The notes beneath the pieces were generated by a model. The model was given only the letters and a program-made list of their open reading frames with translations. It had not been told where the DNA came from and made no database searches. The position numbers and the translations under genes are program-made. A stretch of DNA of 64,000 nt, from sequence record NC_070956.1; one strand, written 5' to 3'. How positions within the stretch are numbered: position 1 is the first letter of the stretch; each line of letters starts with the position of its first letter. This document shows, piece after piece, positions 13,121 through 57,614 of the stretch.

Positions 13121-13145
13121 TTCAGATAGATATTATCCCAATGTA
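13121..13145 (+). promoter_or_regulatory. Putative phage early promoter (copy 1 of 8)
   Basis: TTCAGATAGATATTATCCCAATGTA, intergenic, upstream of 13202. Confidence 0.7.
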
Positions 13146-17585: not shown

Positions 17586-17588
17586 GGA

Positions 17589-17870: not shown

Positions 17871-18211
17871 AGAATCCGTTTGACGTGTCAACCCCCGAGT
17901 ACCACATCCTGGGTCGTCACCAAGTGGCCACCATTTCTCAAACCTACAGTTGTGCACCGAGAGTCCTGGGTGTCGAGCTCGGTGAAAACCGCGGTGTAAA
18001 GGAATGTAAGGAACTCTGGGCTCAAGGTAAACTCCAAGAGTTTATCGGGGAAACTACCGGCGATGTCATGAGACATCGTGAATTGCTCCGCACCGGAGCA
18101 AAGCGGGATGACCTCTTCAAATTCCTCGATACCGGGAACGAGAAACCACTCCCGGTCGGTTCACTCGGTCTTGCTGGCTGGGAAAACTTCGTAAGTCAAG
18201 AAATTCATTAA
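17867..18211 (+). CDS. Hypothetical protein
   Basis: ATGA-coupled ORF, GGAG RBS. Confidence 0.65.
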   Translation: MKNPFDVSTPEYHILGRHQVATISQTYSCAPRVLGVELGENRGVKECKELWAQGKLQEFIGETTGDVMRHRELLRTGAKRDDLFKFLDTGNEKPLPVGSLGLAGWENFVSQEIH

Positions 18212-18216
18212 TACGA

Positions 18217-18250
18217 GAGTTAGCAGGGTCGTCCTGCTAACTCCTCTTTA
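18217..18250 (+). terminator. Terminator-like hairpin
   Basis: GAGTTAGCAGG-GTCGT-CCTGCTAACTC then CTCTTTA. Confidence 0.65.
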
Positions 18251-18267
18251 CTATATAAGGAAACGAT

Positions 18268-26092: not shown

Positions 26093-26117
26093 TTCAGATA
26101 GATATTATCAGAGTGTA
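26093..26117 (+). promoter_or_regulatory. Putative phage early promoter (copy 3)
   Basis: TTCAGATAGATATTATCAGAGTGTA directly after a terminator. Confidence 0.7.
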
Positions 26118-33309: not shown

Positions 33310-33334
33310 TTCAGAGGTATATTATCTTAGTGGA
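33310..33334 (+). promoter_or_regulatory. Putative phage early promoter (copy 4, variant)
   Basis: TTCAGAGGTATATTATCTTAGTGGA, ~30 bp before 33366. Confidence 0.6.
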
Positions 33335-37992: not shown

Positions 37993-39336
37993 CTACTTTT
38001 TCTTTTTCGTCATTGGAATGACAACAGGTCTTTTATATCTGTCATCATCACGGTAAATTTGGAGATACATCAACTCGTCGTCACCTTCTGGTTCAGCGTA
38101 CACTTTGAAGGGATAGAAAGTCAAGTTATCTTTGTTTTGTGTGGGATTCGTGTAGTATCCATTTATCGTTGCATTCAGATAAGATTTTCCCAACCCGGTA
38201 GAAACGTCGGTGTAAGGAATAGCGGGAATTCGAATGCTAGGAATGGGTTCTGGATGTCCAAACTCCATCATGGAGTAATCCATAAAGAATTCATATTCTA
38301 TTGGTGTTCTGGGGATAACGAACCTGCTGTAATCAACCTGAAGGACTGGCTTGTTCAATCCAATTGAATACGTCACATATTTATTATCACTCCTCCTCGG
38401 AACTGAAATTGTAACACGACCCCAGGCGATGTACTGGTGATCATGTTTTGTTTTGGCCGTTACATGGAGGGAATCACCGGTGTAGTAGTTCTTCGGCACT
38501 ATATTGATATCGTAGAGATCGATATCGCTTTTTACTATCATGGTGTCCGGAGAAAATACAGCGTCCTCTGAAGGAATGTAGAATGAAAGATCGTAACAGC
38601 TTTCTTTAACGTTCTCTTTCACAACCACGCCATTTATCAAGCGGGATTGGAAGGGATATGTGTTGTGCCCCACACCGCCTTGATCAGTCAGCGGGTTAAC
38701 TACCCTGATTTCGTAGGTTTTATCCAGCATGACTGATTTAAAGGTCACCACTCTTTTACTTGGATCTTGACTATCATCCAAGGAAGGAGTTATCTGGTCT
38801 TCAAACCACACGTTGCGATTAAAGAACTCGATTAACTCTAAATCAACTACTTTTTGTTCGTTTCCTCCCAGCATCGACGGGATGTGAATGAAGTAGTAAG
38901 TCCAATTCCCTTCACCTCCGATTCGGATTAGTTTTGGTGGAGTTCCAACGGAGATCCAATAGCTACTCTGGTTGGCCGTTTGGAAGTCATCCCAATCACC
39001 GTAACTCTTACACGGAATAACCGACCTATCGACCAACTGGTCCATTGTATAAATCGGGCATTCGATCACACAGTCGGGATAGACATATCCAGTTTTACGG
39101 TTCATGTGTGTAAGCCGGATATGGCTATCGTCAATCCGTATGGGACGTTCGAGATAAAAGTCGTTTTCAAATCCAGGTTGATAATAACGATCCAGACGAC
39201 TTAACTCCGCGTTGTCGTTTTCAGACATTGCTGTTGCTCGTCGTTTAACCACGCTCTTGATTATGGCGTCCATTACGACGCAACTTCTTGGGTGGATCCC
39301 AAGGTTAATACCTTCGGTGCGATGATCAGCCATCAC
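37993..39336 (-). CDS. Putative virion protein, shortest member of the shared-N-terminal-domain family
   Basis: SVVKRR...RYYQ..ENDFYLE...RKTGY...D.VIE aligns by eye with the N-termini of the genes at 42581-57579; AAGGA RBS (GTG 39336 / ATG 39333). Confidence 0.6.
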   Translation of the reverse strand: MMADHRTEGINLGIHPRSCVVMDAIIKSVVKRRATAMSENDNAELSRLDRYYQPGFENDFYLERPIRIDDSHIRLTHMNRKTGYVYPDCVIECPIYTMDQLVDRSVIPCKSYGDWDDFQTANQSSYWISVGTPPKLIRIGGEGNWTYYFIHIPSMLGGNEQKVVDLELIEFFNRNVWFEDQITPSLDDSQDPSKRVVTFKSVMLDKTYEIRVVNPLTDQGGVGHNTYPFQSRLINGVVVKENVKESCYDLSFYIPSEDAVFSPDTMIVKSDIDLYDINIVPKNYYTGDSLHVTAKTKHDHQYIAWGRVTISVPRRSDNKYVTYSIGLNKPVLQVDYSRFVIPRTPIEYEFFMDYSMMEFGHPEPIPSIRIPAIPYTDVSTGLGKSYLNATINGYYTNPTQNKDNLTFYPFKVYAEPEGDDELMYLQIYRDDDRYKRPVVIPMTKKKK

Positions 39337-39368
39337 TTATTCCTTTCTCAAATACAATTGCCCGAAAT

Positions 39369-39381
39369 TAGGCATAGGATT
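39369..39381 (-). promoter_or_regulatory. Putative late promoter (TATG-type)
   Basis: Minus strand AATCCTATGCCTA, TATG ~37 nt upstream of the start. Confidence 0.4.
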
Positions 39382-39409
39382 CATTGTGAAAAATTAATCT
39401 GGAAATGAG

Positions 39410-39434
39410 TTCAGACATATATAATTACAGTGTA
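39410..39434 (+). promoter_or_regulatory. Putative phage early promoter (copy 6, variant)
   Basis: TTCAGACATATATAATTACAGTGTA, same TTCAGA-to-TGT spacing as the other copies. Confidence 0.55.
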
Positions 39435-39546
39435 AATACATGTAGTATTTATAATTAACTTTATTCGTTATGTTTTGCCTGGAAGTTTAATCAGGTATCG
39501 CTGTCTAGAACAGTCTAGACGGGAACAATCAAAGAGGAAATACTCT

Positions 39547-42513
39547 ATGAAGAAGTCATATCTCGCCATTCTGGTTTGGGCCGCTGTATCGGTTGCACCC
39601 TTCAACGTTACAGCGGCGAACATGAACGTCGACCAAGAAGGAACTTGGAGCCCCAATTGGAAGGATAAAAATGAAGGTGGTTACAACAACGGGACCCGCA
39701 ACCCGTATTGTAAAGATAACGAAAATGCAGGAAGCTGGGGTGCTGATGGTTGTACTCAGAACCACAAGAACGACGAGTATGTTCAATGGGGCGAAATGCG
39801 CGGGGTCGTTGCCGACATCCAAACCCTTAACACCTGGACCACCTGGAACAACGAACACGTCAAAGCTGCCGAAAAAGACATTGCGGTCATCAACGGTAAA
39901 ATCGAAAAGTTCGAATATGTTGGGACGCAAATTGCTGCTAATGTTGACGTGATCGTTGACAAAGGCAACAGTGTTATCGAAGGTGCTAAAACTAGCATCA
40001 ATAACAGCATCGACAACAAAATCGAAATCGCCAAGGGTGAAGTTTCCACCCAAATCGATAACTCTGTCACCAACATTGTTAACGGTGGGAACACCGAAAT
40101 CAATGCAAAGTGGGAGGGCGCGAAAGCCACTGCTAACGATTTTGATGAGCGTATCACTCTCAACAAAAATCGCATTGACGATCAGCAAGGCCGTATCGGC
40201 AAAGTGGAAGACGTGGCCGCTCAGAACGGTAAGGATATCAAGGTACTCAACAAAGAAGTTAAGCGTCTCGACGACGTGAAAGCTGATAAGGTTGACCTCG
40301 ATAACCTGGCTGGTCGTGTTGATGTGGTTGAGGGCGATGTTGCAGTCATCAACGGTAAAATCAACCGCGTTGAAAATGCAGGTGCTGTTGTCGCCGGTAA
40401 TGTTGATGTGATCGTCGGTAAAGCTGGCGATGTGATCGATAATCGCGTTGATGCTCGCATCGATGCTAAAGTTGACAACGCCAAGACCACCATCATCAAC
40501 AATAAGGATGGTATCAAAGCCAACGTTGACCTGGCGTACCAAGGTGCCAAAACCGATATCACCAATAACGTTTTGAATGAAATCAAAACTGGTGATAACC
40601 AACTGGTTGTGGATATCAAGAACGACGTGAAGAACGAGATCGATAACAGCATCACCAATGCTGGTAAAGATTTCACCGCACGTATCGATTCCGAAGTTGT
40701 TCGTGGTGAAACTGCTTACAATGAACTCAATGCGCGCATCGATGCAATCGGTAGCGGTGCAGAAGGTTCCCTGGGTGATCGCATTACCAACATTGAAGGC
40801 AAGATCAATAAAGCCGAAGATGCGGGTCGTGTAATCGCTGGTAAGCGCGATGCAGTAGTCTCCGGTGTCAATACCGCCAAAGATGTCGCCAATGACTTTG
40901 ATGCACGTATCAAGGCCAACGCAGGTGAGATCGTTCGTCTCGACAATCAAAAGGCTGATAAAGCAGATCTCGATGCCGCCATTCAAAGTGGTAAAGATGA
41001 AGCTGCAAACATCAACGCTTCTATTGGTGGTCTGGGTGATCGTGTAACTAACGTTGAGGGTGACGTAACAACCATCAAGCAGGATGTTACTAACATCCAA
41101 GGTGATATCACAAGTATCCAAGGTGATGTTGCAAACATCAACGGCAAGATCTCTTACGTAGAAAACAACAGCCAGGAAATCATCAATAAAGCCGGTGCTG
41201 CTGTTGACGCGAAGATCGATGTTGCTTACGAAGGTGCCAAGACTGAAGTGACCAATCTGTACGACAACGCTCGTACCGAAATCACTAACGAAATTGACAA
41301 CGCCGTAAACGTTGCTGTGGAAGGTGCTCGTACTGAAGTCAACAACAAGTATGAAACCATCAAGAACGAAGTCGTTAATGGTGATAACAACACCTACAAC
41401 TCCATCAAAGCTGACATCAGCAAAGATGTGAAGAACGAAATCGTGAACAACATTACTGAAGGTAACAACACCGTTGTAAACGAAATCAAAGATGGTCTGG
41501 TTGAAGAAATCCGCGAAGAAGGTAAAACTGTCGTAGTGGATCTCCAAGACCAAATCGATGCAGCTAATGCACGTATCGATGTACAGACCGGTCGCGGTGA
41601 GCAAGCGTGGGCTTCCTATCAGGAAGATCGTACACATGCCACCCAGCAGTATACCCAGGATCGTCAAGTTGCCGTAACCACTTACAACAACGCTCGCGTT
41701 GAAGCTGAAAGTGCTTATGTTACTATGGATGATAAGAAAGCCGACAAGTCCGATCTGGATGTATTGAATGACAAAATCGATGGTATCGCTGCCAACGGTA
41801 AAACCGACGAAGAAATCAAGGCTATCGCAGACCAAGCTGCTGCTGACGCTGTAAACAATGCCAAGAAAGAAGTCGTCGTGGCTGTTAAAGACAAAGCTCC
41901 TGTAGCTAACGAAGCTGTAACCGCTGCTAAGACCGAAGCTAAGAAGCAGGTACAAGCTAGCATTGATGCGTCCATCTCCAAAGCGAAAGCCGCCGCTAAA
42001 GACCAAGCTGGTCAGGCTGTTGCTGCTGCTAAAGAGAAAGCACGTGCCGAGCTGGCCGCTGCTATGCCGGAGCTGAAAGGTAAAGCAGAAGTTGTTCGTA
42101 CCGAAGCTGTTGAAACCCGCAAGCGTGCCGACCTGGCCCTGAAAGCCACCCAGGACAACCACACTGCAATTCAACAAGAGCGTGCTGATCGTATCCAAGG
42201 TCAGCGTGAGACTCTGCAATCTGCCAACAACTACACTGATCAGAAAGTTGAACAACTGCGTGGTGAAGTCGAGCATAACCGTCGTAAGGCCGCCGCTGGT
42301 ATCGCTGGCGTAGCTGCAATGACCAACATCCCGACTATCTCCCAAGGTAAGAACTTCGCGATTGGCGCTGGTATGGGTTACTATGATGGCGAGCAATCCC
42401 TGGCTATCGGTTCCCAAGGTCGTTTCAACGAGAACCTCACTGGTAAAGCAACTATCTCCACCGACTTCCACGGTAACACTGTAATTGGTGCTGGCGTAGG
42501 TTTCGAGTGGTAA
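39547..42513 (+). CDS. YadA-type trimeric autotransporter adhesin
   Basis: GAGGA RBS; signal peptide MKKSYLAILVWAAVSVAPFNVTAA; long coiled-coil stalk with N@d heptads and three KADKxDL motifs; ANNYTD; anchor AGIAGVAAMTNIP...GYYDGEQSLAIG...IGAGVGFEW. Confidence 0.9.
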   Translation: MKKSYLAILVWAAVSVAPFNVTAANMNVDQEGTWSPNWKDKNEGGYNNGTRNPYCKDNENAGSWGADGCTQNHKNDEYVQWGEMRGVVADIQTLNTWTTWNNEHVKAAEKDIAVINGKIEKFEYVGTQIAANVDVIVDKGNSVIEGAKTSINNSIDNKIEIAKGEVSTQIDNSVTNIVNGGNTEINAKWEGAKATANDFDERITLNKNRIDDQQGRIGKVEDVAAQNGKDIKVLNKEVKRLDDVKADKVDLDNLAGRVDVVEGDVAVINGKINRVENAGAVVAGNVDVIVGKAGDVIDNRVDARIDAKVDNAKTTIINNKDGIKANVDLAYQGAKTDITNNVLNEIKTGDNQLVVDIKNDVKNEIDNSITNAGKDFTARIDSEVVRGETAYNELNARIDAIGSGAEGSLGDRITNIEGKINKAEDAGRVIAGKRDAVVSGVNTAKDVANDFDARIKANAGEIVRLDNQKADKADLDAAIQSGKDEAANINASIGGLGDRVTNVEGDVTTIKQDVTNIQGDITSIQGDVANINGKISYVENNSQEIINKAGAAVDAKIDVAYEGAKTEVTNLYDNARTEITNEIDNAVNVAVEGARTEVNNKYETIKNEVVNGDNNTYNSIKADISKDVKNEIVNNITEGNNTVVNEIKDGLVEEIREEGKTVVVDLQDQIDAANARIDVQTGRGEQAWASYQEDRTHATQQYTQDRQVAVTTYNNARVEAESAYVTMDDKKADKSDLDVLNDKIDGIAANGKTDEEIKAIADQAAADAVNNAKKEVVVAVKDKAPVANEAVTAAKTEAKKQVQASIDASISKAKAAAKDQAGQAVAAAKEKARAELAAAMPELKGKAEVVRTEAVETRKRADLALKATQDNHTAIQQERADRIQGQRETLQSANNYTDQKVEQLRGEVEHNRRKAAAGIAGVAAMTNIPTISQGKNFAIGAGMGYYDGEQSLAIGSQGRFNENLTGKATISTDFHGNTVIGAGVGFEW

Positions 42514-42528
42514 TTTAATAAAGTGATA

Positions 42529-42562
42529 AACTCCTACCTCCCTTAACGGGGAGGTAGGAGTT
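42529..42562. terminator. Bidirectional terminator
   Basis: AACTCCTACCTCCC-TTAACG-GGGAGGTAGGAGTT between convergent genes. Confidence 0.85.
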
Positions 42563-42580
42563 CTTTATATCACTTTTTTG

Positions 42581-45500
42581 TTACTTGACCATTTTGATCG
42601 GAACAGTTACACGCCAATCCTTGGTTCTGAGAGCTGTTTCTTGATCAGTGAATGTGAACGACACGTCTCCTGTACCAGCCTCACCTGTGGATGTGACTGT
42701 CATGGTTGTGTACCCGGAAGGATCCGGTTCACCAGTGATCTGTCCGACACTCTGGAAGAATCGATCATTCTTGACGACATCCTTAGTGATGTTACCCTTC
42801 ATAACCTTGAACTGACCACCCCACCTGTCTTGTCTCAGTACAAACTTAACTGTCGATGTCGCGTTATTAACCGCAGTGCCTTCAGTCACACTAAGAACAT
42901 CAACAGGTTGTTCCGGACAAACGTAAGTTCCCTCACATCTGACATTGAATTGCCGCTTAGCAATGGTCACCACCAATTCAGGCCAGAACTCGCCACCGAG
43001 ATGACTAGTGCTGACAGAGAGGTAGTACACACCAGGGTCTAATGCTGGATCGTGGATGAGCATGTTGGAATAACCGTGGAGTACAGGTAATCCAGGATCT
43101 TTGTTCTTCATACTCAATGTGAAGAAGGTTGCACCTTGGAGAGGTTCCCCGTCCACTTCAATGCGACACTTGATCCGCTGCATCTTGATCGGAACGATAC
43201 CTTCACTGTCAGGATAAAGTACCAGATCTGTGATAGGAGGTCGAGCCATAGCAATGTTTCCGACAACACTGTGGGTGGTTACTTTACCATCTGGCGCGGT
43301 ATAAGTTGCGTGGATAGTAAACGGTATATCATCAGTACTGAAGTACGCATCCCTATTGGTAAAGAACAAGAGACCATTTGCATCAGTCCCTCGACTTTCC
43401 ATGGCGGTTTGGTTAACAACTCCTTCCCAAGACTTGTCAAACGTAACTTCGATTTGGACTTTGGGGTCATCGATAGCAACAGGCTTATCGTCGTAAGAAA
43501 GTGACATGGGCATACTTTCTACTTCGAACGGTTGCCAGTTCAACAGCGCTTGGTGATTGATAAGAATATTCTCATCGGCTTTCACTGTTGAGTTTATCGT
43601 TACCTTGGCGACCTGGGCTTCTGTAGGCGTTGCAATATCGTTTCTTGTAAACGCCACTACGTTCTTGTGGGATCCAGGCGAGATCATCTTCCAAGGAAGG
43701 TCAAGACTCTTCCCAGTCACCTTTTCAGGAATACCAATCTGTAAACCACCGGTGGTTGTGGTGAAGGCAGGAACTGTTTTGTGGTTATCCGTGAAACGAG
43801 TTTCATCATTCCACAATGCAAATGACACCACACCCTTATCGTCACGTTTACCGTCAAGAGAGAACTGATTAGGTATCGCCAGGAAGTCAGGGCCGTCGTA
43901 CGGTTTGAGAGTGAACTTCTTGGTATACGAGAAACGACGCCAGCCGTTATCAACACCAATAGCCATGTCAAACTTTACATCTACTACCTTTTCCTCGGTT
44001 ACTTTCTTGATGTAGAGCCACGCCGTTTTATCCCAAGTATAAGGATCGATATGTTTCACAACTTCTCTACCAGGCGTGGTAACAAAGTCGATCAATACAT
44101 CTCTGGTACGTTCTTCACCGTTCACCAGTACCTTAACTGGGAGTCCACCGCCATCATACCGATTCGCTACGATATTCTCACCCGATAAAGGAACAACCGA
44201 GATAACGGAATCTTTGACGATGTTGGGATAGACGTAAAGCTGGTCCCACCAAATCGTTCCCAAGGGAGAGATATAATGACTCTTGAATCCAACTGTGTCG
44301 GTTACCATCACCCCGGGTTGACCGGAGTCCCTGATGACTTCGTAATACAACCGATTGGGTTCTGCACGAGTTAACTGGATGAGCTTCTTGGGCCCCAATT
44401 CTTCCCCTACCGGGAAATCCATATCTTCAGTGGGAATGTTCTTTCCACCAATTGCAGCGATATAGTTGGTGTAAAGTGTCTCTCCTTTCTTACCCGTCAA
44501 ACCGTTAGGATCCAACTTAACTTGGGTGAGTCTTCCGTAACCAGGAATAGCCTTGGTGATCTCCAAATCAATGAAACACTTGGCGGTGTGTACTTCGGTA
44601 AGAACTGTATGTCGGAACGTACCTATCAGCAGGTCCAGCAACACACCATCTGTGACGGCATTGGTGATCGGTCCTGCATAGAGTACGCCACCTTTATACT
44701 CACCTTTAGAACGGACACTTATTCCGTGAAGCATGGAAGTCATGAATTCAGGGACTGTGGCAAGTTTGATAGGAGCGCCTTTAAACTTCGCCTTGACCAC
44801 GATGCCCAGCTCGGCACCAGTCGGTGCGTTAATAAGCAACGGATATCCGTAAAGTGTTAAGTCGGAAGGGGTGTCTTTCTGGATTTTTACGGTCATCTTT
44901 GCGGTGGTGTCATAGTCGAAGCCACCAGAGCTATGGATCATGTTCACCTGGATTTCTTCAATGAAATCTTCAGTAGTTGATCCACGGAATGCCTTGATCA
45001 CCATTTCCAGTTTGTTATCAGTGCGCTCGATGATCAATCGGTTAGACGGACTAAATGTCATGTCTACAAGAGTGGTAACGTCCACGTCACCAATGGTGAG
45101 TTTGAGGTTATGTCGGACCTCTTGTCCACGCTGGATGTTGACGTTCTTGGGGATGTTGTGTTGTATGTCATTTAGACCCAACTCTTCCCGGATTAGCTCA
45201 CTTACGTAGATGATGACATTCTCGCTCCCGATCGCTTCGTCTGTTACCTTTACAGTTCCAGAAGTAAACGTGTTGGGATCGATGTCAGTGGCGTTCTTTC
45301 TCGATAACTCCATCGATTTAAAGAAGATATCTCCAAAGAGATCATTAATCGCTTGGAGATCATTCAGTTGGCGATTGGGTAAACACACCCCGATTGAATT
45401 GCGCCAGGCCAAGAACAGCACTTTACCCTGGACGGTACCGCGTTTAAAACCTTCAATGAAATCTTCGAAGGTCATAACCACTTCTACCGCGACACCAAAG

Positions 45501-45790
45501 TCCGTGAGAACGTCTCTGAGCGATACTTGTTCCAGCTCCAGGTCAACCCTCGCAAAGTTACGAGAACGTCGTGTAAGGCACACACGTTTGACATTATCAG
45601 GTCCTGTATGGACTCGTTCAATGATAAAGTCTTCCGCTTTCATTCCACTGTAACGAACATCGGCAAGTTGACGATCAACTATGTCACCCTGTTCTGTTAC
45701 GAGTTCATGTCGTTTCCGGAGGAAACGTTTAACAGGTGAATACAATGGGTCTTTTACCCATCGTGGAAACACCTTGCTTTCTTCTGCCAT
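42581..45790 (-). CDS. Large beta-rich putative virion protein (~1069 aa), shared N-terminal domain family
   Basis: Start refined to MAEESK after AAGGGG; WVKDPLYSPVKRFLRKR...RYSGMKAEDFIIE...SRNFARVDLELE. Confidence 0.65.
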   Translation of the reverse strand: MAEESKVFPRWVKDPLYSPVKRFLRKRHELVTEQGDIVDRQLADVRYSGMKAEDFIIERVHTGPDNVKRVCLTRRSRNFARVDLELEQVSLRDVLTDFGVAVEVVMTFEDFIEGFKRGTVQGKVLFLAWRNSIGVCLPNRQLNDLQAINDLFGDIFFKSMELSRKNATDIDPNTFTSGTVKVTDEAIGSENVIIYVSELIREELGLNDIQHNIPKNVNIQRGQEVRHNLKLTIGDVDVTTLVDMTFSPSNRLIIERTDNKLEMVIKAFRGSTTEDFIEEIQVNMIHSSGGFDYDTTAKMTVKIQKDTPSDLTLYGYPLLINAPTGAELGIVVKAKFKGAPIKLATVPEFMTSMLHGISVRSKGEYKGGVLYAGPITNAVTDGVLLDLLIGTFRHTVLTEVHTAKCFIDLEITKAIPGYGRLTQVKLDPNGLTGKKGETLYTNYIAAIGGKNIPTEDMDFPVGEELGPKKLIQLTRAEPNRLYYEVIRDSGQPGVMVTDTVGFKSHYISPLGTIWWDQLYVYPNIVKDSVISVVPLSGENIVANRYDGGGLPVKVLVNGEERTRDVLIDFVTTPGREVVKHIDPYTWDKTAWLYIKKVTEEKVVDVKFDMAIGVDNGWRRFSYTKKFTLKPYDGPDFLAIPNQFSLDGKRDDKGVVSFALWNDETRFTDNHKTVPAFTTTTGGLQIGIPEKVTGKSLDLPWKMISPGSHKNVVAFTRNDIATPTEAQVAKVTINSTVKADENILINHQALLNWQPFEVESMPMSLSYDDKPVAIDDPKVQIEVTFDKSWEGVVNQTAMESRGTDANGLLFFTNRDAYFSTDDIPFTIHATYTAPDGKVTTHSVVGNIAMARPPITDLVLYPDSEGIVPIKMQRIKCRIEVDGEPLQGATFFTLSMKNKDPGLPVLHGYSNMLIHDPALDPGVYYLSVSTSHLGGEFWPELVVTIAKRQFNVRCEGTYVCPEQPVDVLSVTEGTAVNNATSTVKFVLRQDRWGGQFKVMKGNITKDVVKNDRFFQSVGQITGEPDPSGYTTMTVTSTGEAGTGDVSFTFTDQETALRTKDWRVTVPIKMVK

Positions 45791-45811
45791 AACTATACCC
45801 CTTATTGTCGT

Positions 45812-45820
45812 CATAGCATT
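45812..45820 (-). promoter_or_regulatory. Putative late promoter (TATG-type)
   Basis: Minus strand AATGCTATG with upstream T-rich tract. Confidence 0.4.
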
Positions 45821-45838
45821 TGAGAATAAACAAAATAA

Positions 45839-45868
45839 AGAGAACCCTACCGAAAGGTAGGGTTCTCT
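45839..45868 (-). terminator. Rho-independent terminator
   Basis: AGAGAACCCTACC-GAAA-GGTAGGGTTCTCT; T-run on the minus strand. Confidence 0.8.
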
Positions 45869-45881
45869 AATGACTTATTGT

Positions 45882-48800
45882 TTACTTGTTATGGATACCA
45901 CCACCGAACGCACGGTTATCCAGTGCACGGTTCACAACAGCATCCAAGGTTTCGTTGTTCGGGTACTTGTAAGTACCAGTCAACTGGAAGTCCGAAGGTG
46001 TCGCATTCGGACCCGCACCAGGGAATGTCGCTGTCAAGATACCGGTTGCAGGATCGTAAGTTTCGTTGGCTACGCCAGCACCATCGGTACGACCTGGGGT
46101 GTACACGCGAGTAACTGTCGGGCCCAACTTAACAGACGGACTGAACGAACCATCGGCTTCTTTACACATCATGGAGAAGTTGACATTACCACCACCCCAA
46201 GAGATGTCATACAACTCAACGTTACGCGCACCCTTCACAGGGATTGACGTTGCTGAGAAGCTGATAGTGAACGGAACGTACACTTCTGCGTTCTCCGCAT
46301 TACCGTCTACCTTGATCCAGCCATTACCGTTGTAGTTGGTACCGGCGGCGTCAGGAGCTGCAACAGCGTAGGTTGTTACATACGCACTCTCATTGTTCAG
46401 GTGTTCACAAACGTAACGATTAGTGCCAGGAATGAGACCTGTCATGTTACCGAATACGTAAGTGGCTTGTCTCGGCATGACCGAGTTAGCACCCGGAACC
46501 AGGTTGTGAGACATTTTCAGGTTGTTACCAATCCAGGTGTAACCTGTGGTGTTTGCGCTGTAGTACCAAGCGCGACGAGAACCAGAAATCTGGGTCTTGG
46601 CCGCTGCTTCGGTTGCCACCATTGCAGTACAACCAACGAGCATGCTCAGGTCAACAGGAATCGGTTCGATGTCGAACTGAACTGTGAGAACACCAGTTGC
46701 TGGGTCATAAGCACTGCTCTTCACATCCAGGGAACCACCCTTAGAACCTTGTGCTGAATCCAGTTTGGTCACGGTAGCTTCAGTCGGAAGATCGTTAGTG
46801 TTATTCTTCAGCGTGTACTTCATTGTGGCCACGTCATCCTTAACGGAAACAGAATCCAGCGTTGAGACGTACGGTCCTTTAGGGAGGACATTGGTGTAAT
46901 CCAGAACCCAAGGAAGTCTTACCTCCAAGTTATCCGGTTGTTTGAGAGCCAGGTAACCATTACCAGTGTAATGGGTGTCCTGTGTTGTGCTCGGAGCAGC
47001 TACGTTGTAGTCGATGATCCAAGATACTTCACCCTTGTTGTGGATGGTACCAACCGCACCTGTTGTCGCAGACGGATTAACTGCCAGTGCCACGAACGCA
47101 CCGTCACCTTGGAAGTTGTAACCGCCGTTAAGCGTCACATAGTAGTTGCGCTGCAAGCGACCATTCTTCCATTCGATGCCAAGGTCACGCATATCGAAGA
47201 CGTTCTGTACGAAGTCGACTTTATACTTAGCGATCTGGCCATCATTGGTAGTGATCTCCATATCTGCTTCGAACTTATCGGCCCAAGAACCAGTGAGGAT
47301 CTTGGTCTTCGCAGACCAACTCAGAACACCAGTCGCAGGGTCGTAGGACTGGGTGAGTTGGTTAGAAACGTTATCGAGGAAACCTTTGACCGGAGTGAAC
47401 TTGGTGATACGGGCACTTGTCGGAATCGTTCCGGTCAGATCCATTTTCAGGTTCTGAGAGAACAAATCAACTTGGTGGTACTGACTAACAGGACCGGCGG
47501 AAGGAACGATCGGTTCGCTATAGTCTACAGTGAACGGAATGATCACCTTAACCTTGTTGCCTTTATCGACGGAGTAGTTACCGGTACCCGTTGTCTTGTA
47601 CGGACGAATGTCAGTACGACGCGGGAGATTCAGTTTCCACACCTTGTCACCAGTAGTGTGTTCCAGCAAGCGAGCGGTACCAGCATTGTTGGTGTATTCG
47701 ACACCACTCAGAACCAAGTTGTCGATAGCCACAGTACCTGCGGTCACTTCATGATCCAGGACCAGAGCGTTAGCACCCAGCGTTGCGTTCACACTCTTAA
47801 CGAGATGTTCCACATGCTGGTAGGTCACGTGAGGTTTGAAGGTACTACCGTCTTCGTTACCAGAGTCAATGGTACCCTCGAGGATAACTTCAACTGGTGT
47901 TGCACCGCTAGGAGCGTCACAGTCATAAGTCACCACAAAGAGACCAGTTGTCTTGTCATAGACAGGAGGTTTGGTCGAAGAGATGGTCGCGCCAGTTGCC
48001 ACAGGTTCACCGACAAACTTAACATCAGGCGGGAATGCACCGTCGTTATTGGCAAACTTGTAGGTCTCTACCAGTTCATTGTTAGTGATAACAGTACTGA
48101 CCTTGGTAGGAGTGTAAATAACCGGAGCGGGAGGTACCACAGCCTTGGTAACTTCCATCTTACTATCCAACGCCGGTTTGGTGATGTTATCGCCATAAGC
48201 CGGGAAGTTCACACGACTGTTGAAGGTCGCCTGACCACCGTTCTTAGCGAACGCATCAGTCATCTCGAACACAAATGTCAAGATACCAGTTACTGGATCG
48301 TAGCTTTCACTCTTAGGTGTCTTGGTTCCGTTCAGGGTATTCAGAACGTAGTCGAACGGCTTATTGGTATAAGCTGTGCCTTTCGGAACACCGCCTTGGG
48401 CAAAAGCGTTGTTAACTGTCACTGTCAACAGGTTGCCTTCCAACTCCATGTCTTTCAGCCAGGTGTTAACGTAACCGTTGTTAGTCAAGAACTGCTTGAA
48501 GGTACAAGTCCACGGGAGTGCGTAGAACAACTTACCACCTGCGTTGGCCATGAACTTACCGCTGACCTTGTAGACAGTAACGTCATCAGTCTTCGGAGGA
48601 GTTGTCGGGACATAGCACAGATAGAAGATGTTCGGGGTAGCACTACCGGTCTTCTCGGTACGGATGGGTCCGGTTGATTCAGGATCAGCCGAAGTCACCA
48701 CGTGGTAGCCTTCAGTGATGTCTACATCACCGGCATTACGTTTCACCTTGTGGGTAACACGGAACGCCTTTTCGTAGTCCTGCCATCCAGCGTTGGTCTG

Positions 48801-51800
48801 GGTGACACTATGGACATACAGGGTGTGAGTGAGAGGAGCGGTCAGCTCTTTGACACCAGCCTTGAACACCGGATTGATCACAACAGGGAGTGCGGCCGTA
48901 CCGGTCGGTTTGGTAATCCCAACCTTGAAGCTGAAACGACCAGTTTGGTCATCATAAACTTCTTCAGTTGCTACACCGTCGATGTTGGAAGGAGAAGAGA
49001 ACGCCTTAACCATCATCTCTGTCGGAATGCTGCCGTCACCATTGGTGATGTCATAGACAATCGCCATAGTTGCGTCGTCAACAGTACTGGAGACGTGAGT
49101 AGCGATCAGAATCCGATCCGGGTTAACAATAGCCTCGAACAGCGTGTCCTTACCAATACCACCGTCGTCGGCCCAGATATCGGTTACGAACTTGATCTTC
49201 TCGCCATCCAGCAACGGGTTCATCTCGAATACAAACGAACCTTCACCAGTTGCAGGATCGTACTTGTACAGCTCACCGTCGACACTCAACGGTGTGCGGT
49301 TCCCGCCAACAGTTTTCTCGGCTGAACTGAACGGTGTTTTCAGGCGGAGATTGAACGGATAGGTATCACCTTCCGGAGTGACCTTGAAGGAGACGGTCAA
49401 CTGGTTAGTATCCACGTCATACTTCCCACCAAGGGTGGTGGTGGTAAAGGTCTTCGGTTTAGGCAAGATGTAACTGCCGCGAGTCACAGTCGGTGTGATG
49501 AACCCACACAGGGACTTCAGCTTGATAGTCCCGATAGCCGAAACGGAGGTTTGTGCAGTCGCATTACCGTAATAGTGAACCACCACAGTAATTACACCAG
49601 TTGCAGGATCGTAGCTTTGGGCCTGGATTTTCCCGTTATCGGCAGTGTTGGACCCACTAATGGCTCCTGTAAAATATCCATCCAACGGGATCTTGCCGTC
49701 TTTGGTCCTGACATCAACCAACCAACTCACCGCCATGACCGGTCGAGTTCCAACAGGGACATTTACTTGTTTGTACTCGGGGTCGTTCCGGAATATAGCT
49801 GTGCCTTCATTCACATCTGAGAGCACGTGGTAATCAGAACGAGAAGCTGTTACCGTCATATTCTCGAACGGGTAATTGAATTCCAGAGTCCAATCCCAGC
49901 GGTTTCTCGGGTCCTCGTGCATCGGAACAGCGACGGTACCGACCCAGACGTTACGATCTTCACCTTCTGTGGCTTTACGTTTCCAGACAAGCTCAGCTTC
50001 GAAGCCAGGATGGTTCCCGCCATTACTAATCTTGAAGTTGGTCAGCTTGGCGGCCACATCTACAGAACTAACGCCCTTGGTATCGCGGAACGAATACTCA
50101 AACTTGAGTTCTTGGTTGCAATAGGACTTGTTCAGCAGATAGATGGTCAACGGCTCCACCGTCTCGGTCACACGGAACGGGACTTCGGTATCTTCAACCA
50201 GTACGATCCCCTCGTAGTCGTACCGTACCGGAACAGTGGTCACTTCCTTAGCTGTTACGCTATAAGTGATGGTCATGGTCCCGGCATTGTAATTCTGGGA
50301 AACCGGGTTAACCCCTTCCAGACCAGTCCCACCATTGATGGGTTGAACCACAACAGTTGTCGGTGCAGGAGAGCCATCGTTAGCCACGACTTTACCGGAG
50401 TGAGTGATCAACTTGGTGGTCATCACCGGCTTTTCCCAGACAATGGAGTACGCGCTCTTAGCTGTCGTTTCCACAGTGTAGGACTCAGAGGCGTTCGGGT
50501 ATTCGTCGGCGTAGACACGACCTTCAACCAGGTAGTTGGTACCCTCACCACTCGGATTCTCCAGAGCGATATCAGCGTACACAGTTCCTGTATTGACGTC
50601 GTAACGACGATTGGTCAATTCCTTGGTACCGTTCTTGGTGTTTACCGCACGGGTAACCGGGGTCACCAGTGTAGCACCTTCAGGGATGGTGTCGTCGGAC
50701 AGACGAACTTGCATACTGACAGTACCGACGGTCCCGTTAACAGTCAGTTTGGCTTCAGTCACCTTGATCGGGGTACGGACAACTTTGACGACCACGTCAT
50801 CGATGAACTGAAGTTCCGGCTTACCAACGTACGGAGTCAGAATTACTGACCCAACGAATGCGTACGTCATATCCTTGGAAGGATCGAGTGTCACAGTCGC
50901 TTCGAACTTGGCGAGACCAGTCACGGGATCGTAACTTGTGTCTTCCTTGGTGATCGGAGTCGCAACGTTGGTTGCAGTAGCAAACGGAATCTTGAAGTCA
51001 GCGGCTACTGGGTAGGACCCGTCTGCAAGCCGAACCTTGTAAATGCCGATTGCTTTATCACCGACAACTTCCAGAGACTGGAGAGTGATACTCGGATCGG
51101 TGTTTCCAGTGCCATCATCCGGGAGAGTCCAGGAATCAGGTTTCACTGTACCAGTTGTTTCGGCTACAGCGTAGCTGGTACCAGAAGGAACAGTTGCACT
51201 TACGGTGAGCGCATACTTCTCGATGGTGTCGTTCGGTGCAACGATGTCCGCACTAACTTCCCACAAGCCCTTGCTCTTATCAATCTCCTTGAAGGAGAAC
51301 TTGGGATCAGCAGCGATGTTCTCACCAGAAACATAGGCAAGTGTGGCGTCGCCGGTGTAGGCGGCATCACCAAGGTACAGCCCTACCTTCCTGACGATAC
51401 GGAGACCATTAAGCGTGGTTTCAACATCGGTTGCAGTGAGATCGAGTACCAGGTCCTTGACGGATACGGTGAACAAGGAACCATCTGCTTCGATACGAGC
51501 GTTGTAGGTGATCGGTTCGATCACACCTGTCTTCAACACGAGGTCGAAGTACAAGACACCGGTACCCGGGTGGTAATCCTGGTTAGGTGTTCCCTGATCA
51601 GGTGCGATACCAGAGATGGAACTGGCGTCGTAGAACTTGGCATCACCGGGATGTACGTTGGGGGAGCCGATACGATTGATCCGAACAGTATGACGGATCT
51701 TGTCGCCCATCAGCTTGACACCCAGGTCAGTAGCTTCCCATTCCACCTCGCCGCTATTGGTGTACGTTCCGGTGAAATCACCGAACAGAGGCTTCTTGAA

Positions 51801-54266
51801 GTCGTCTGCTTTGAACTCACCCTTGGCGGAGTAAACGTTATCACCCAGATCGGGGTAAACGATATCCACTGTCAGCGTCCAGAAGTCACCGGCCTTTTCC
51901 AGAGTGTGAGTACCATTGGGTTTGAGGCCGACTGTATTGGTCAGACCCAACAGAGTCAGATCTTTAACCTTGGAACCATCGTCACTGTAGGTTGCGTCCA
52001 AAGTCCAGCGAAGTTTGGGATCGGCGCTGTCCAGGAGGAACTCGGTGTTCGTGGTGGTGAAGTTGATTTCGAGATCGTTATCGAATACAGCTTCGAATTT
52101 GGCGGTTGCTGTTTTCACAGTTCCGTCGCGTTCGTGAGTACCGTGGACAACCCATTCGAAGTCGACAGTCAGTTCTACCGGATCATTTCCATAAGCAGTC
52201 AGTTCTGCGGAAACGGTACCGGATTGGAGATCAACGTCCCAACCAGGCTGGGAGAAACTTTCGGGTACGAGACCCTTAATGTTTTCCATACCTTTAGGGT
52301 CGATAGCCGGAATGTCTTTACCATCAGACAACACGGCGTTATACGGCCACGTTACCTTGGTCGGTGCGCGAGGGGAATCGAACACTCCCTTACCTGGTGT
52401 GATGACGGCACTGACCACAGTCACCCAAGTACCATCACCGTTGGTGGTTCCAAACGGAGTGGACGGGGTGCTACAGACCACGCTGAGTTTTACAGAGATC
52501 TTGATCGGCTCAATGTCCGGATCAGGAATGATAACGATTGTCACGAAACCATTCTCGATAACTGCTGCGTCACGCATTGTCCCACCAACGATGGCCGGGA
52601 ATACGTTTGCGATCATCGGATCGTTCGGGCTTTCAGCGTTGTCTACCTTAACACGATAAGTGACCAACTGGGTCTTTTCATCGTAGGTGAGAGTCTGTTG
52701 GGTGAACGTGAGGACCGGATCACCAGTGGTATCGAACTCCTTGGAGAACTTCATGGAGTAGGGAACCATCTCCTCCAGGTCGTCGATCTTTGCTTCACAG
52801 AAAAGTTCGATCTCGTACTTCTCAGGCGTTTGCGGAATCACGGTTATGTCGTGATAGACCTCACCGTTTTCGGTGACGACACCAGGACCTGCGTTGTCGT
52901 TGTCTTCCAAACCAACAGTCCCCGGAAGGAACTTATCGGAGCGTTGCGTGAAGTAAGGAACAATCCCACCCACATAACGGAAACGACCAACCATGTTCAG
53001 TACTGGACCGAATGTGGGTTCATCATAGACAAACTCGATCTCCGGGCGCACTTCCTTAGGGATGGAAACTTCGGTTTCTGCTTTGCGGAGACCGATATCC
53101 CACTTATGGGTTTGAGCACCCATCGTCTCAGTTTTCAGAGCGAACGTGTAAACATCACCATCGACTGATTTGACTTCTGCTGTTTCAGACTTCAGCTTGT
53201 CGGACAGACCAGTGACATATTCACCAGTATAGGTGTCTTTCACTTTAGCCGTCAAGGTGTACGCATCAACAACTGCCACTTGTTCGATGACCAAGCGATC
53301 CACGTCAACACCACCAGTGAACTCAGCGCCCTTGGTCACTGACTTAGAACCTTCAGTGTCTTTCCGAGTGAAGTCCACTTTAACGGTCAAAGTACCGAGG
53401 AACTGATCGTTGACTTCTTCGTCACCGGTATACGGTTCGAATTCACTGTAAACAGTAGCGACTGTTTTGTGTTCGGTCACAGAGAGTTCGTTGGAAAGTT
53501 CCAGACGGAAACCAGCAGGTACTTTGTAGTCACTAGCGATGCTAACTACCGGTGACATGGTTTCGATACCCTGCCAGTGTGCTACCAGTTCGATATCGAA
53601 CTTGGCTACGACAGCAGTCTTGTTTTCCATGCCAGTTGCACGACTAGGGTTGATCTTGACGACCATACCGTCGCCGCCATCCAGGTTCTCGTCATAAACG
53701 AAAACTGCTACCGGGGTGGGTTCCAGGAGTGACCGATCATTGACCATCATGGTGTAGTCAGCACTGAGTGGATGGGCGTCCTCGGCGGAAACATCCAGGC
53801 GATCAAAGAAGATGTTGGAAGTGGCTTCACGGAGACCACCTTCACCTTTCAGAGTCTTGAGGAAGAGACAATACTGTCCGGTCGGTTCATAAAACACGTA
53901 CTCGAAATCCCAGTTGTTACTGCGGAAGAGTGCGTGAAGTTCACCGATAGTTTTAACGGTTTTGACGTTAGTCTCCATACCAGTCAGGATTTCACCGAAG
54001 GGCAAACGCTCTACAGGGATATCCACCCGACCGAAACCGGTGATTCGTGAAGTGATACAAACCAAAGACTCACGATCCCCCTGGATGGGTTCGATACGCA
54101 CATCTTCGGCTTTAAGGTTATTGTAGCGCTCTCTCGCTACTTCGAGTTCGCCCTTGGGATCATCGATTTCTAGATCAGCAAGGCGCTTTGCGAGGAACCG
54201 TTGTACAGAGACCCAGAATGGATCACGTACAAAGGCACTCCTTTCAACAATCAACCCGTTTTCCAT
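45882..54266 (-). CDS. Giant (2794 aa) beta-sandwich-repeat putative virion fibre, shared N-terminal domain family
   Basis: FVRDPFWVSVQRFLAKR...RYNNLKAEDVRIE...ITGFGRVDIPVE; at least 12 YDPxTG-type motifs; T/V/G-rich; GGAG RBS. Confidence 0.7.
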   Translation of the reverse strand: MENGLIVERSAFVRDPFWVSVQRFLAKRLADLEIDDPKGELEVARERYNNLKAEDVRIEPIQGDRESLVCITSRITGFGRVDIPVERLPFGEILTGMETNVKTVKTIGELHALFRSNNWDFEYVFYEPTGQYCLFLKTLKGEGGLREATSNIFFDRLDVSAEDAHPLSADYTMMVNDRSLLEPTPVAVFVYDENLDGGDGMVVKINPSRATGMENKTAVVAKFDIELVAHWQGIETMSPVVSIASDYKVPAGFRLELSNELSVTEHKTVATVYSEFEPYTGDEEVNDQFLGTLTVKVDFTRKDTEGSKSVTKGAEFTGGVDVDRLVIEQVAVVDAYTLTAKVKDTYTGEYVTGLSDKLKSETAEVKSVDGDVYTFALKTETMGAQTHKWDIGLRKAETEVSIPKEVRPEIEFVYDEPTFGPVLNMVGRFRYVGGIVPYFTQRSDKFLPGTVGLEDNDNAGPGVVTENGEVYHDITVIPQTPEKYEIELFCEAKIDDLEEMVPYSMKFSKEFDTTGDPVLTFTQQTLTYDEKTQLVTYRVKVDNAESPNDPMIANVFPAIVGGTMRDAAVIENGFVTIVIIPDPDIEPIKISVKLSVVCSTPSTPFGTTNGDGTWVTVVSAVITPGKGVFDSPRAPTKVTWPYNAVLSDGKDIPAIDPKGMENIKGLVPESFSQPGWDVDLQSGTVSAELTAYGNDPVELTVDFEWVVHGTHERDGTVKTATAKFEAVFDNDLEINFTTTNTEFLLDSADPKLRWTLDATYSDDGSKVKDLTLLGLTNTVGLKPNGTHTLEKAGDFWTLTVDIVYPDLGDNVYSAKGEFKADDFKKPLFGDFTGTYTNSGEVEWEATDLGVKLMGDKIRHTVRINRIGSPNVHPGDAKFYDASSISGIAPDQGTPNQDYHPGTGVLYFDLVLKTGVIEPITYNARIEADGSLFTVSVKDLVLDLTATDVETTLNGLRIVRKVGLYLGDAAYTGDATLAYVSGENIAADPKFSFKEIDKSKGLWEVSADIVAPNDTIEKYALTVSATVPSGTSYAVAETTGTVKPDSWTLPDDGTGNTDPSITLQSLEVVGDKAIGIYKVRLADGSYPVAADFKIPFATATNVATPITKEDTSYDPVTGLAKFEATVTLDPSKDMTYAFVGSVILTPYVGKPELQFIDDVVVKVVRTPIKVTEAKLTVNGTVGTVSMQVRLSDDTIPEGATLVTPVTRAVNTKNGTKELTNRRYDVNTGTVYADIALENPSGEGTNYLVEGRVYADEYPNASESYTVETTAKSAYSIVWEKPVMTTKLITHSGKVVANDGSPAPTTVVVQPINGGTGLEGVNPVSQNYNAGTMTITYSVTAKEVTTVPVRYDYEGIVLVEDTEVPFRVTETVEPLTIYLLNKSYCNQELKFEYSFRDTKGVSSVDVAAKLTNFKISNGGNHPGFEAELVWKRKATEGEDRNVWVGTVAVPMHEDPRNRWDWTLEFNYPFENMTVTASRSDYHVLSDVNEGTAIFRNDPEYKQVNVPVGTRPVMAVSWLVDVRTKDGKIPLDGYFTGAISGSNTADNGKIQAQSYDPATGVITVVVHYYGNATAQTSVSAIGTIKLKSLCGFITPTVTRGSYILPKPKTFTTTTLGGKYDVDTNQLTVSFKVTPEGDTYPFNLRLKTPFSSAEKTVGGNRTPLSVDGELYKYDPATGEGSFVFEMNPLLDGEKIKFVTDIWADDGGIGKDTLFEAIVNPDRILIATHVSSTVDDATMAIVYDITNGDGSIPTEMMVKAFSSPSNIDGVATEEVYDDQTGRFSFKVGITKPTGTAALPVVINPVFKAGVKELTAPLTHTLYVHSVTQTNAGWQDYEKAFRVTHKVKRNAGDVDITEGYHVVTSADPESTGPIRTEKTGSATPNIFYLCYVPTTPPKTDDVTVYKVSGKFMANAGGKLFYALPWTCTFKQFLTNNGYVNTWLKDMELEGNLLTVTVNNAFAQGGVPKGTAYTNKPFDYVLNTLNGTKTPKSESYDPVTGILTFVFEMTDAFAKNGGQATFNSRVNFPAYGDNITKPALDSKMEVTKAVVPPAPVIYTPTKVSTVITNNELVETYKFANNDGAFPPDVKFVGEPVATGATISSTKPPVYDKTTGLFVVTYDCDAPSGATPVEVILEGTIDSGNEDGSTFKPHVTYQHVEHLVKSVNATLGANALVLDHEVTAGTVAIDNLVLSGVEYTNNAGTARLLEHTTGDKVWKLNLPRRTDIRPYKTTGTGNYSVDKGNKVKVIIPFTVDYSEPIVPSAGPVSQYHQVDLFSQNLKMDLTGTIPTSARITKFTPVKGFLDNVSNQLTQSYDPATGVLSWSAKTKILTGSWADKFEADMEITTNDGQIAKYKVDFVQNVFDMRDLGIEWKNGRLQRNYYVTLNGGYNFQGDGAFVALAVNPSATTGAVGTIHNKGEVSWIIDYNVAAPSTTQDTHYTGNGYLALKQPDNLEVRLPWVLDYTNVLPKGPYVSTLDSVSVKDDVATMKYTLKNNTNDLPTEATVTKLDSAQGSKGGSLDVKSSAYDPATGVLTVQFDIEPIPVDLSMLVGCTAMVATEAAAKTQISGSRRAWYYSANTTGYTWIGNNLKMSHNLVPGANSVMPRQATYVFGNMTGLIPGTNRYVCEHLNNESAYVTTYAVAAPDAAGTNYNGNGWIKVDGNAENAEVYVPFTISFSATSIPVKGARNVELYDISWGGGNVNFSMMCKEADGSFSPSVKLGPTVTRVYTPGRTDGAGVANETYDPATGILTATFPGAGPNATPSDFQLTGTYKYPNNETLDAVVNRALDNRAFGGGIHNK

Positions 54267-54292
54267 TTATTGGCTCCAGGATATGTGGGTTA

Positions 54293-54319
54293 TAAAGAAG
54301 GGGTGAACGAATCCACCCC
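54293..54319 (-). terminator. Rho-independent terminator
   Basis: Minus strand GGGGTGGA-TTCG-TTCACCCC-TTCTTT. Confidence 0.75.
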
Positions 54320-54357
54320 ATACTACATTAGTTCGCAGATAACTGTGACTGGTGTCT

Positions 54358-57579: not shown

Positions 57580-57614
57580 GGGTTTCTCCATTTGGTTTGT
57601 TATTACTTATTACC

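Follow-up and report, generated by a model that had tools for sequence, protein, structure and literature searches.

Why strictly lytic phages of several unrelated groups keep genes for outer-membrane adhesins is a question to which no answer was found in the literature searched, and it is raised by the gene LAh10_85 (QDH47018.1) of Aeromonas phage LAh10. The gene lies in a stretch of 64,000 nucleotides of sequence record NC_070956.1 (the window, to which positions refer unless another record is named). It was picked out in a first-pass annotation made from the sequence alone, which read it as a complete YadA-type trimeric autotransporter adhesin (TAA) with its own promoter and terminator, inserted among the structural genes of a jumbo phage. 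The analysis described below upholds the reading of the protein and suggests, with less certainty, a fibre that would be displayed on the infected Aeromonas cell.

Identity of the phage and the gene

The region 39000-43000 was 100% identical to Aeromonas phage LAh10 (MK838116.1, 260,310 bp), where subtraction of 62,000 from a record position gives the window position, and the LAh10_85 coding sequence (CDS) was a 100% match to MK838116.1 101547-104513. LAh10, isolated from wastewater on a clinical A. hydrophila strain, has myovirus morphology (head about 116 nm, tail about 183 nm), and its authors found no genes for chromosome integration (PMC7033617). LAh10, D3 and D6 were later classified in the genus Ludhianavirus, with D9 grouped with them, and this genus was assigned to the phiKZ-like, nucleus-forming Chimalliviridae. 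Annotated in the LAh10 record are subunits of a multisubunit RNA polymerase, tubulin-like proteins and an internal head protein of phiKZ type. LAh10 is a virulent giant phage and not a prophage, and the origin from a prophage or a host contig that had been allowed for at first is set aside by its isolation as a virulent myovirus without integration genes.

The GenBank label of LAh10_85 is ‘putative YadA-like protein’. The open frame spans 39475-42513 on the + strand with the ATG at 39547. Antisense to the whole gene is a 971-residue open reading frame (ORF; 39556-42471, - strand). The AT skew was 0.21 in 40001-42000, where the coding strand of LAh10_85 is A-rich, and the antisense ORF is a shadow of this biased strand; the + frame was favoured over it because the substitution pattern supports the + frame.

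Domain architecture of LAh10_85

A signal peptide, a passenger lacking any recognisable head and a canonical membrane anchor follow each other in the intact 988-residue ORF, and by its sequence LAh10_85 has every part of a complete trimeric autotransporter (Table 1). The signal peptide, as read directly, is MKKSYLAILVWAAVSVAPFNVTA followed by A. The maximum Kyte-Doolittle hydrophobicity was 2.8 as computed on the near-identical N-terminus of D6, a calculation also made for the relatives described below.

The sole Pfam match was to YadA_anchor (PF03895), which covered residues 931-988 with an E-value of 2.7e-14 and 53.4 bits (cut-off 22.7). Four anchor beta-strands are located at residues 937-986. 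A separate model of residues 860-988 had a predicted local distance difference test score (pLDDT) of 84 and comprised one long helix and the four strands. When this model was compared with the PDB by Foldseek, the top five matches were all TAA anchors (three Hia, AtaA and YadA); their TM-scores spanned 0.72-0.85, and those normalised to the target 0.74-0.85. By sequence and fold together the matched entries included 2lme, 2gr7, 3emo and 9vnj, and the family profile and PDB sequence searches matched YadA (2lme) and Hia (2gr7/3emo). The protein ends in ...GAGVGFEW, the aromatic last residue being an insertion signal for outer-membrane proteins. Matches to the NCBIfam BimA models were at the level of the anchor only and far below their cut-offs, and a PADLOC match to LmuB was rejected as a spurious coiled-coil similarity.

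AlphaFold2 (AF2) predicted no regular structure for the membrane-distal tip, and the variable region of the protein reaches to about residue 108. Tryptophans are found at residues 34, 38, 64, 81, 97 and 100 and cysteines at residues 55 and 69 of this N-terminal region. The tip had no match in Pfam, and an exhaustive HMMER search of 1.84 billion representative proteins gave no homologue beyond its own cluster. Neither YadA_head nor YadA_stalk was matched in Pfam at E <= 0.01 in LAh10_85 or in seven relatives, no neck model matched any of these proteins, Pfam gave no other named passenger module for LAh10_85, and no Eib or YadA head structure was among the PDB search matches for LAh10_85. Judged by these sequence comparisons, the whole family is ‘headless’.

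The stalk is predicted to be alpha-helical in a full-length AF2 monomer, whose pLDDT of 49.6 restricted its use to secondary structure. It is rich in Asn (10%), Val and Ile, has only two Pro, and includes patches of 7-residue and 11/15-residue periodicity that are weak but present. With a helical rise of about 0.148 nm per residue, the 842 residues would form a rod of up to about 125 nm if the helix were continuous. In the PDB searches the stalk weakly resembled trimeric coiled coils from unrelated viruses, among them fibritin and the P22 tail needle, and these matches were taken as non-specific.

The complete YadA-type autotransporter of the first-pass annotation is therefore borne out by the intact ORF, the signal peptide and the anchor match. 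The same is true of its parts, namely a Trp/Cys-containing N-terminal domain without head repeats (a tip of approximately 60-85 residues), a long stalk (helical over about 840 residues in the model) and a canonical anchor (by domain annotation and by fold).

Promoter-like motif, terminator and timing

The spacer 5' of LAh10_85 is 210 bp in length. It gave no match to a sigma-70 promoter, and this candidate was set aside. Part of the spacer is conserved in LAh10, D6 and D3, where the alignment was nearly invariant from CCCGAAATTAG to AAATACAT and the sequence downstream diverged. The gene on the far side of this block and the 5' untranslated region (UTR) both differ among the three phages.

The core of the block is a motif, conserved in D6 and D3, that belongs to a family of the form TTTCAGA-N3-ATATTAT-N3-AGTGTA with members at 13121-13145, 26093-26117, 33310-33334 and 39410-39434. 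Further copies occur in MK838116.1 near 132604, 144903, 192528, 194801, 227383, 238483 and 244199. The strict pattern occurred four times in the window, always intergenic and upstream of + strand genes, and was absent from 100 shuffles, an enrichment figure that is indicative only as the pattern was set after the sites had been seen. Genome-wide, in a scan of single genome pieces that were not joined, at least 11 related sites were found, all of which were on the + strand, intergenic and shortly 5' of blocks of + strand genes, mostly small hypothetical genes. This uniform placement and orientation is a stronger argument than the enrichment figure.

In jumbo phages with RNA polymerases of their own, a conserved AT-rich motif upstream of operons marks the promoters that the virion RNA polymerase uses early, whereas sequence does not allow middle and late promoters to be predicted; the Chimalliviridae are described as relying on such phage enzymes for transcription, independently of the host RNA polymerase (PMC7598289). 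The missing sigma-70 match is thus no argument against a promoter. The recurrence of the motif and its resemblance to this class suggest that LAh10_85 has its own promoter of the early class and would be transcribed early. The motif at 39410-39434 is a probable promoter for a phage RNA polymerase, and the motif family is probably the early-promoter consensus of Ludhianavirus, no description of which was found in the literature examined.

Other elements of the spacer were less informative. The sequence of two TATAATTA boxes had no further copy anywhere in the window, and a 13-mer drawn from the spacer was not enriched. The 5'UTR of LAh10 contains a repeated palindromic element, GTCTAGA-ACA-GTCTAGAC (39503-39520, + strand), that is not conserved in D6 or D3.

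A terminator is common to LAh10_85 and the convergent gene LAh10_86. Its hairpin (42529-42562) has a 15-bp G+C-rich stem, a folding energy of -35.6 kcal/mol and a z-score of -9.1 versus shuffles, and the stem is invariant in the four phages. Of the promoter and terminator claimed at first for the gene, the terminator stands, and the promoter stands as a phage motif but not as a sigma-70 promoter.

Conservation, selection and the mosaic tip

Orthologues of LAh10_85 are present in D3, D6 and D9. Over the last 520 codons LAh10 differed from these phages by 51-58 synonymous and 12 non-synonymous differences, the ratio of non-synonymous to synonymous substitution rates (dN/dS) was 0.05-0.06, and the C-terminal half of the protein is under strong purifying selection. 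Within Ludhianavirus the C-terminal 520 or so residues are near-identical and the last 124 residues are 100% identical, as is the anchor in D3, D6 and D9. The G+C content of the gene (47.9%) is near that of the window (47.4%), which means that the gene was not recently acquired from the host; Aeromonas has a far higher G+C content of about 61%.

Towards the membrane-distal end the sequences diverge. The middle of the stalk differs by insertions and deletions between the Ludhianavirus phages, and the Trp/Cys tip is common to LAh10 and D6 only. D3 and D9 have another signal peptide, about 150 extra coiled-coil residues and another small module. A tblastn search of phages with the tip returned LAh10 and D6 only, with partial matches in D3 and D9. 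By sequence, a mosaic distal end on an invariant base would be the pattern expected of a ligand-binding end.

Relatives in prophages and virulent phages

A word-based search of 5.8 billion proteins gave only 22 relatives of LAh10_85. They comprised ‘YadA-like family proteins’ from Proteus and Providencia and proteins on two uncultured contigs of 200 kb and 169 kb, the latter of which bears sheath and virion genes of phiKZ type. Four proteins from Proteus and Providencia prophages and two from the uncultured jumbo contigs were 27-38% identical to LAh10_85 along most of the stalk and share its headless plan. The LAh10/D6 tip (residues 24-108) is absent from these relatives and unique to LAh10 and D6. 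The tip type of D3 and D9 is common to Proteus and Providencia proteins, and another tip type is common to the uncultured phiKZ-like contig and a P. mirabilis prophage.

Two of the bacterial genes were inspected. Each immediately follows the tail-fibre genes of a lambdoid prophage, and one of them adjoins the integrase. A superinfection-immunity protein is encoded in the same tail region of the Proteus prophages with relatives. In Proteus, the genes of the closest cellular relatives stand as morons where the tail modules of lambdoid prophages end, which indicates that the family travels with phages.

The anchor is more widespread. YadA anchors are carried by lytic jumbo phages, as a survey with tblastn returned 88 phage records, mostly of virulent phages, that include Rak2-like giants (GAP32, fHe-Yen9-04, Munch and XbC2, among others), Erwinia phage Yoloswag (260 kb), Kuravirus (phiEco32), the Salmonella FSL SP-058/076 group, and Proteus, Cronobacter and Pantoea phages. 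PHROG families 26246, 17426 and 8062 cover phage proteins with YadA anchors, IMG/VR contains 20 more loci with such genes, and the GAP32 record already cites PF03895. The anchors of phiEco32 gp119 and other Kuravirus, of Salmonella FSL SP-058/076, of Rak2-like phages (GAP32_424, fHe-Yen9-04 g441, XbC2) and of Yoloswag gp261 were 37-49% identical to that of LAh10_85 over approximately 100 residues. Unlike LAh10_85, the proteins of these other virulent phages are mostly shorter (265-742 residues) with unrelated passengers, and among the listed phage records outside Ludhianavirus the match was to the C-terminal region only, with none to the first 200 residues.

A Sec signal peptide together with a terminal W or F was found in D3, D6, the two uncultured jumbo contigs, Yoloswag, GAP32 and the Proteus prophages, so that Yoloswag gp261 and GAP32_424 resemble LAh10_85 at both ends. 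The deposited start of phiEco32 gp119 is not an ATG and has no recognisable signal peptide after it; this start may be mis-set. In phiEco32, Yoloswag and GAP32 the anchor gene lies among small accessory or early-type genes and not in the tail modules. Homologues of yadA were described in 2013 by Moreno Switt et al. in the virulent Salmonella phages FSL SP-058 and SP-076 and in phiEco32, where those of the Salmonella phages were not adjacent to tail genes and their function was left open (PMC3728262).

Comparison with known systems

LAh10_85 shares with the type Vc proteins YadA, Hia and AtaA the signal peptide, an anchor with four strands per chain, the C-terminal aromatic residue and a long stalk that is predicted to be helical. 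It differs from them in its origin from a virulent phage, its phage promoter motif and a stalk that is unusually long for a headless protein.

Eib genes are prophage-borne in E. coli, and the first-pass annotation had likened LAh10_85 to these lysogenic-conversion factors. The likeness holds in that LAh10_85 is a phage-borne TAA and its Proteus relatives occupy a classic moron position. It fails for architecture and lifestyle, as the carrier of LAh10_85 is not temperate and the protein is without the N-terminal domain, the beta-roll head and the neck or saddle of Eib proteins (PMC13534694). TAAs of the Eib type make cells aggregate and form chains, the latter effect depends on the head, and Eib binding of immunoglobulin G (IgG) maps to the coiled-coil stalk (PMC13534694). 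No similarity to solved Eib passengers was detected for LAh10_85 in the PDB searches.

A functional analogy, and not a homology, is provided by Llp of the virulent phage T5, which is exported early to the outer membrane of the infected cell, as LAh10_85 would be. Llp is an outer-membrane lipoprotein that protects by blocking FhuA. Whereas Llp is small and directed at one receptor, LAh10_85 has 988 residues and no lipobox and would be a barrel-anchored fibre.

Proposed role of LAh10_85

We consider it moderately probable that LAh10_85 is a fibre displayed on the infected Aeromonas cell, probably early, with adhesion as its selected function, and that it is not a part of the virion. Adhesion was chosen as the function because a variable tip stands on a conserved base and because characterised TAAs are adhesins. 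The gene would be transcribed as its own unit from the phage motif, which resembles those found at early operons, with transcription ending at the strong hairpin, and the product would be exported by Sec through a cleavable signal peptide. Three C-terminal four-stranded segments would then build a 12-stranded barrel in the outer membrane with the C-terminal Trp as the insertion signal, and the passenger would thread through the barrel and zip into a trimeric coiled-coil rod, no longer than about 125 nm, that bears a small exchangeable tip. Such fibres would convert the surface of the infected cell over the latent period. The variable tip may bind a ligand on neighbouring cells or surfaces and in this way hold the infected cell in a dense host population or biofilm, and a dense lawn of rods could incidentally hinder the adsorption of other phages. 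The clumping of cells and the shielding of receptors, both of which had been proposed initially, would be compatible with the anatomy of the protein.

Several points weigh against a displayed adhesin. No published study of the expression, location or function of any lytic-phage TAA was found in the literature searched, nor was a virion proteome of LAh10 or of its relatives. Aggregation by Eib requires the head domain (PMC13534694) that is missing in LAh10_85, and the tip is predicted to be disordered and is unmatched, so that a binding function is assumed. The early timing depends on analogy with a class of motifs and not on transcripts. In the D3 and D6 records and in the PHROG families, proteins of this type go under ‘recognition of host receptor’ or ‘tail protein’, cyanophage ‘YadA domain’ proteins were found in virions by liquid chromatography-mass spectrometry (PMC9146016), and LAh10_85 adjoins a cluster of possible receptor-binding proteins.

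The main rival to an adhesive fibre retains its export and display but makes exclusion or shielding the selected function, which is rather unlikely by our estimate. An early lawn of rods some 100 nm in length, or a receptor-masking tip, would prevent rival phages from adsorbing to the infected cell and progeny virions from adsorbing to debris. The early-type promoter motif and a fibre that is very long relative to lipopolysaccharide or capsule would suit such a role, as would the occurrence of the gene in strictly virulent phages of several unrelated groups and the superinfection-immunity protein encoded in the same tail region of the Proteus prophages. A purely steric shield, however, leaves unexplained why tips are exchanged between close relatives over a fixed stalk base. 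LAh10_85 lacks a lipobox and resembles no known exclusion protein, PADLOC yielded no meaningful match, and we know of no TAA that works by exclusion.

That LAh10_85 is a virion fibre or receptor-binding protein, with the YadA-like C-terminus serving only as a trimerisation module, is improbable. It would agree with the labels and the cyanophage proteins just mentioned, with the position of the gene beside the possible receptor-binding paralogues LAh10_86-88 and with the weak likeness of the stalk to phage trimeric coiled coils (fibritin and the P22 needle). Virions assemble in the cytoplasm, however, and a cleavable Sec signal peptide, conserved across the family, does not fit a virion part. 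The complete beta-barrel anchor with its C-terminal Trp matches membrane-embedded structures, and the signal peptide, barrel anchor and terminal aromatic residue together are what type Vc export needs; the two labels are rejected as the leading interpretation on this ground. LAh10_85 also has no counterpart of the N-terminal domain of LAh10_86, LAh10_87 and LAh10_88, its promoter motif is common to blocks of small genes and not to the minus-strand structural cluster, and the anchor gene of other phages sits outside the tail modules. Among the phages that the anchor search named (10 of the 16 organism names shown) there was no cyanophage.

Equally improbable, and a minor rival, is a passenger ‘moron’ from temperate phages that confers a benefit in the animal or the environment (host-animal factors, or serum resistance as in Eib) and none in the lytic cycle. 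In its favour, the nearest relatives in cells are morons of prophages, with the same placement as Eib genes, and Eib IgG binding is located in the stalk. Against it, genes for integration are missing from LAh10, the protein showed no similarity to solved Eib passengers, and the gene appears to be used by the virulent phage because it is intact, under strong purifying selection, phage-like in base composition and equipped with a phage-type promoter.

A wider proposal built on a displayed fibre, whether it serves to hold on to neighbours or to keep rivals out, is put forward tentatively, as one that falls somewhat short of probable. Virulent, nucleus-forming jumbo phages would use an early promoter and the Sec and outer-membrane assembly machinery of the host to plant a fibre of about 100 nm in what amounts to a lytic ‘surface conversion’, the tip would be swapped like that of a tail fibre, and the family would move between prophage morons and lytic giants.

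Novelty and significance

The gene and its family assignment were already public, YadA homologues in virulent phages have been on record since 2013, and no new kind of element is described here. The additions are modest and consist of the recurring promoter motif that suggests early expression, the mosaic tip over a constrained base and the link between prophage morons and jumbo phages. Early production and display of LAh10_85, if they occur, would make it a clear example of host-surface remodelling by a virulent phage during the latent period. This would bear on competition between phages and on how infected cells behave in biofilms, which LAh10 was studied as a means of disrupting, and also on how the labels ‘adhesin’ and ‘tail protein’ are read in the genomes of therapeutic phages. 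The annotation is corrected as well, in that neither ‘recognition of host receptor’ nor ‘tail protein’ is likely to describe a protein with a signal peptide and a membrane barrel.

Neighbouring genes and further observations

Table 1. Features of LAh10_85 and adjoining genes, with positions in the window
Feature	Position	Strand	Basis
LAh10_84 (447 residues), divergent upstream neighbour, variable between phages	37993-39336	-	Comparison with D3, D6 and D9
Conserved upstream block (85 bp) in LAh10, D6 and D3	39361-39445	+	Alignment
Phage promoter-like motif TTCAGA-N13(AT-rich)-AGTGTA, core of conserved block	39410-39434	+	Recurrence, conservation
Ribosome-binding site AAGAGGA, 8 nt 5' of ATG	39532-39538	+	Direct reading; kept in D6
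CDS of LAh10_85 (QDH47018.1), trimeric autotransporter by sequence, 988 residues	39547-42513	+	Intact ORF
Sec signal peptide, residues 1-23 (MKK, hydrophobic core, VTA then A)	39547-39615	+	Direct reading
Membrane-distal tip, residues 24-84, Trp/Cys/Asn/Gly-rich	39616-39798	+	AF2 coil, pLDDT about 30
Predicted alpha-helical stalk (coiled-coil type), residues 85-926	39799-42324	+	AF2 helices, short breaks
YadA-type membrane anchor, residues 927-988, linker and four beta-strands, ending in Trp	42325-42510	+	PF03895
Hairpin terminator and T-run, common to convergent LAh10_85 and LAh10_86	42529-42579		Folding, conservation
LAh10_86 (1077 residues), LAh10_87 (2794 residues) and LAh10_88 (1077 residues), paralogues, context only	42581-57591	-	blastp

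Upstream of LAh10_85 the + strand carries long runs of small genes. The divergent neighbour LAh10_84 is specific to LAh10 and marks a variable spot that adjoins the conserved promoter block: its counterpart in D3 and D9 consists of the last 75 or so residues only, present as short ORFs, and none was detected in D6.

The paralogy of the three downstream genes was indicated by blastp (E 1e-13 for LAh10_86 and LAh10_87, 3e-6 for LAh10_87 and LAh10_88, and 0.011 for LAh10_86 and LAh10_88). They share an N-terminal domain of about 125-260 residues with LAh10_105, a protein of 204 residues encoded elsewhere in the genome (MK838116.1 131221-131835, - strand), and this domain is not present in LAh10_85. 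No similarity of LAh10_84 to LAh10_86-88 was detected. Pfam and PHROGs gave nothing for LAh10_84, LAh10_86 and LAh10_88, and Pfam gave nothing for LAh10_87. Homologues of LAh10_86 occur across the Chimalliviridae in two or three places per genome, and the copy in AerS_266 is annotated as ‘adhesin’. LAh10_86-88 and LAh10_105 may be a family of receptor-binding proteins or virion fibres that dock through the domain they share. The D9 orthologue of LAh10_86 is annotated as two adjacent CDSs with one break, in what is a partial genome deposit. Synteny around the LAh10_86 homologue is not kept in the more distant phage CF8, and a clean insertion site was not definable.

LAh10_85 is located at the end of this cluster, convergent with LAh10_86-88, and not inside it. 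The first-pass annotation had it interrupt a minus-strand paralogue cluster, which is correct for LAh10_86-88 downstream and incorrect for LAh10_84 upstream, which is not a paralogue. Its placement of the gene among structural genes is likewise partly right, with giant and possibly receptor-binding proteins on one side and small early-type genes on the other.

Elsewhere in the window, about 1 kb at 17275-18267 is without an annotated gene and contains + strand ORFs of 93 residues (17589-17870) and 114 residues (17867-18211) that are probably small genes missed in the annotation. The LAh10 record also has about 4 kb without annotation at 213456-217509, outside the window. On either side of a putative baseplate gene, the + strand encodes two very large proteins of 2311 and 826 residues (2517-9452 and 10505-12985) whose annotation is that of BspA-family leucine-rich-repeat surface proteins; these, too, may be virion proteins for host recognition.

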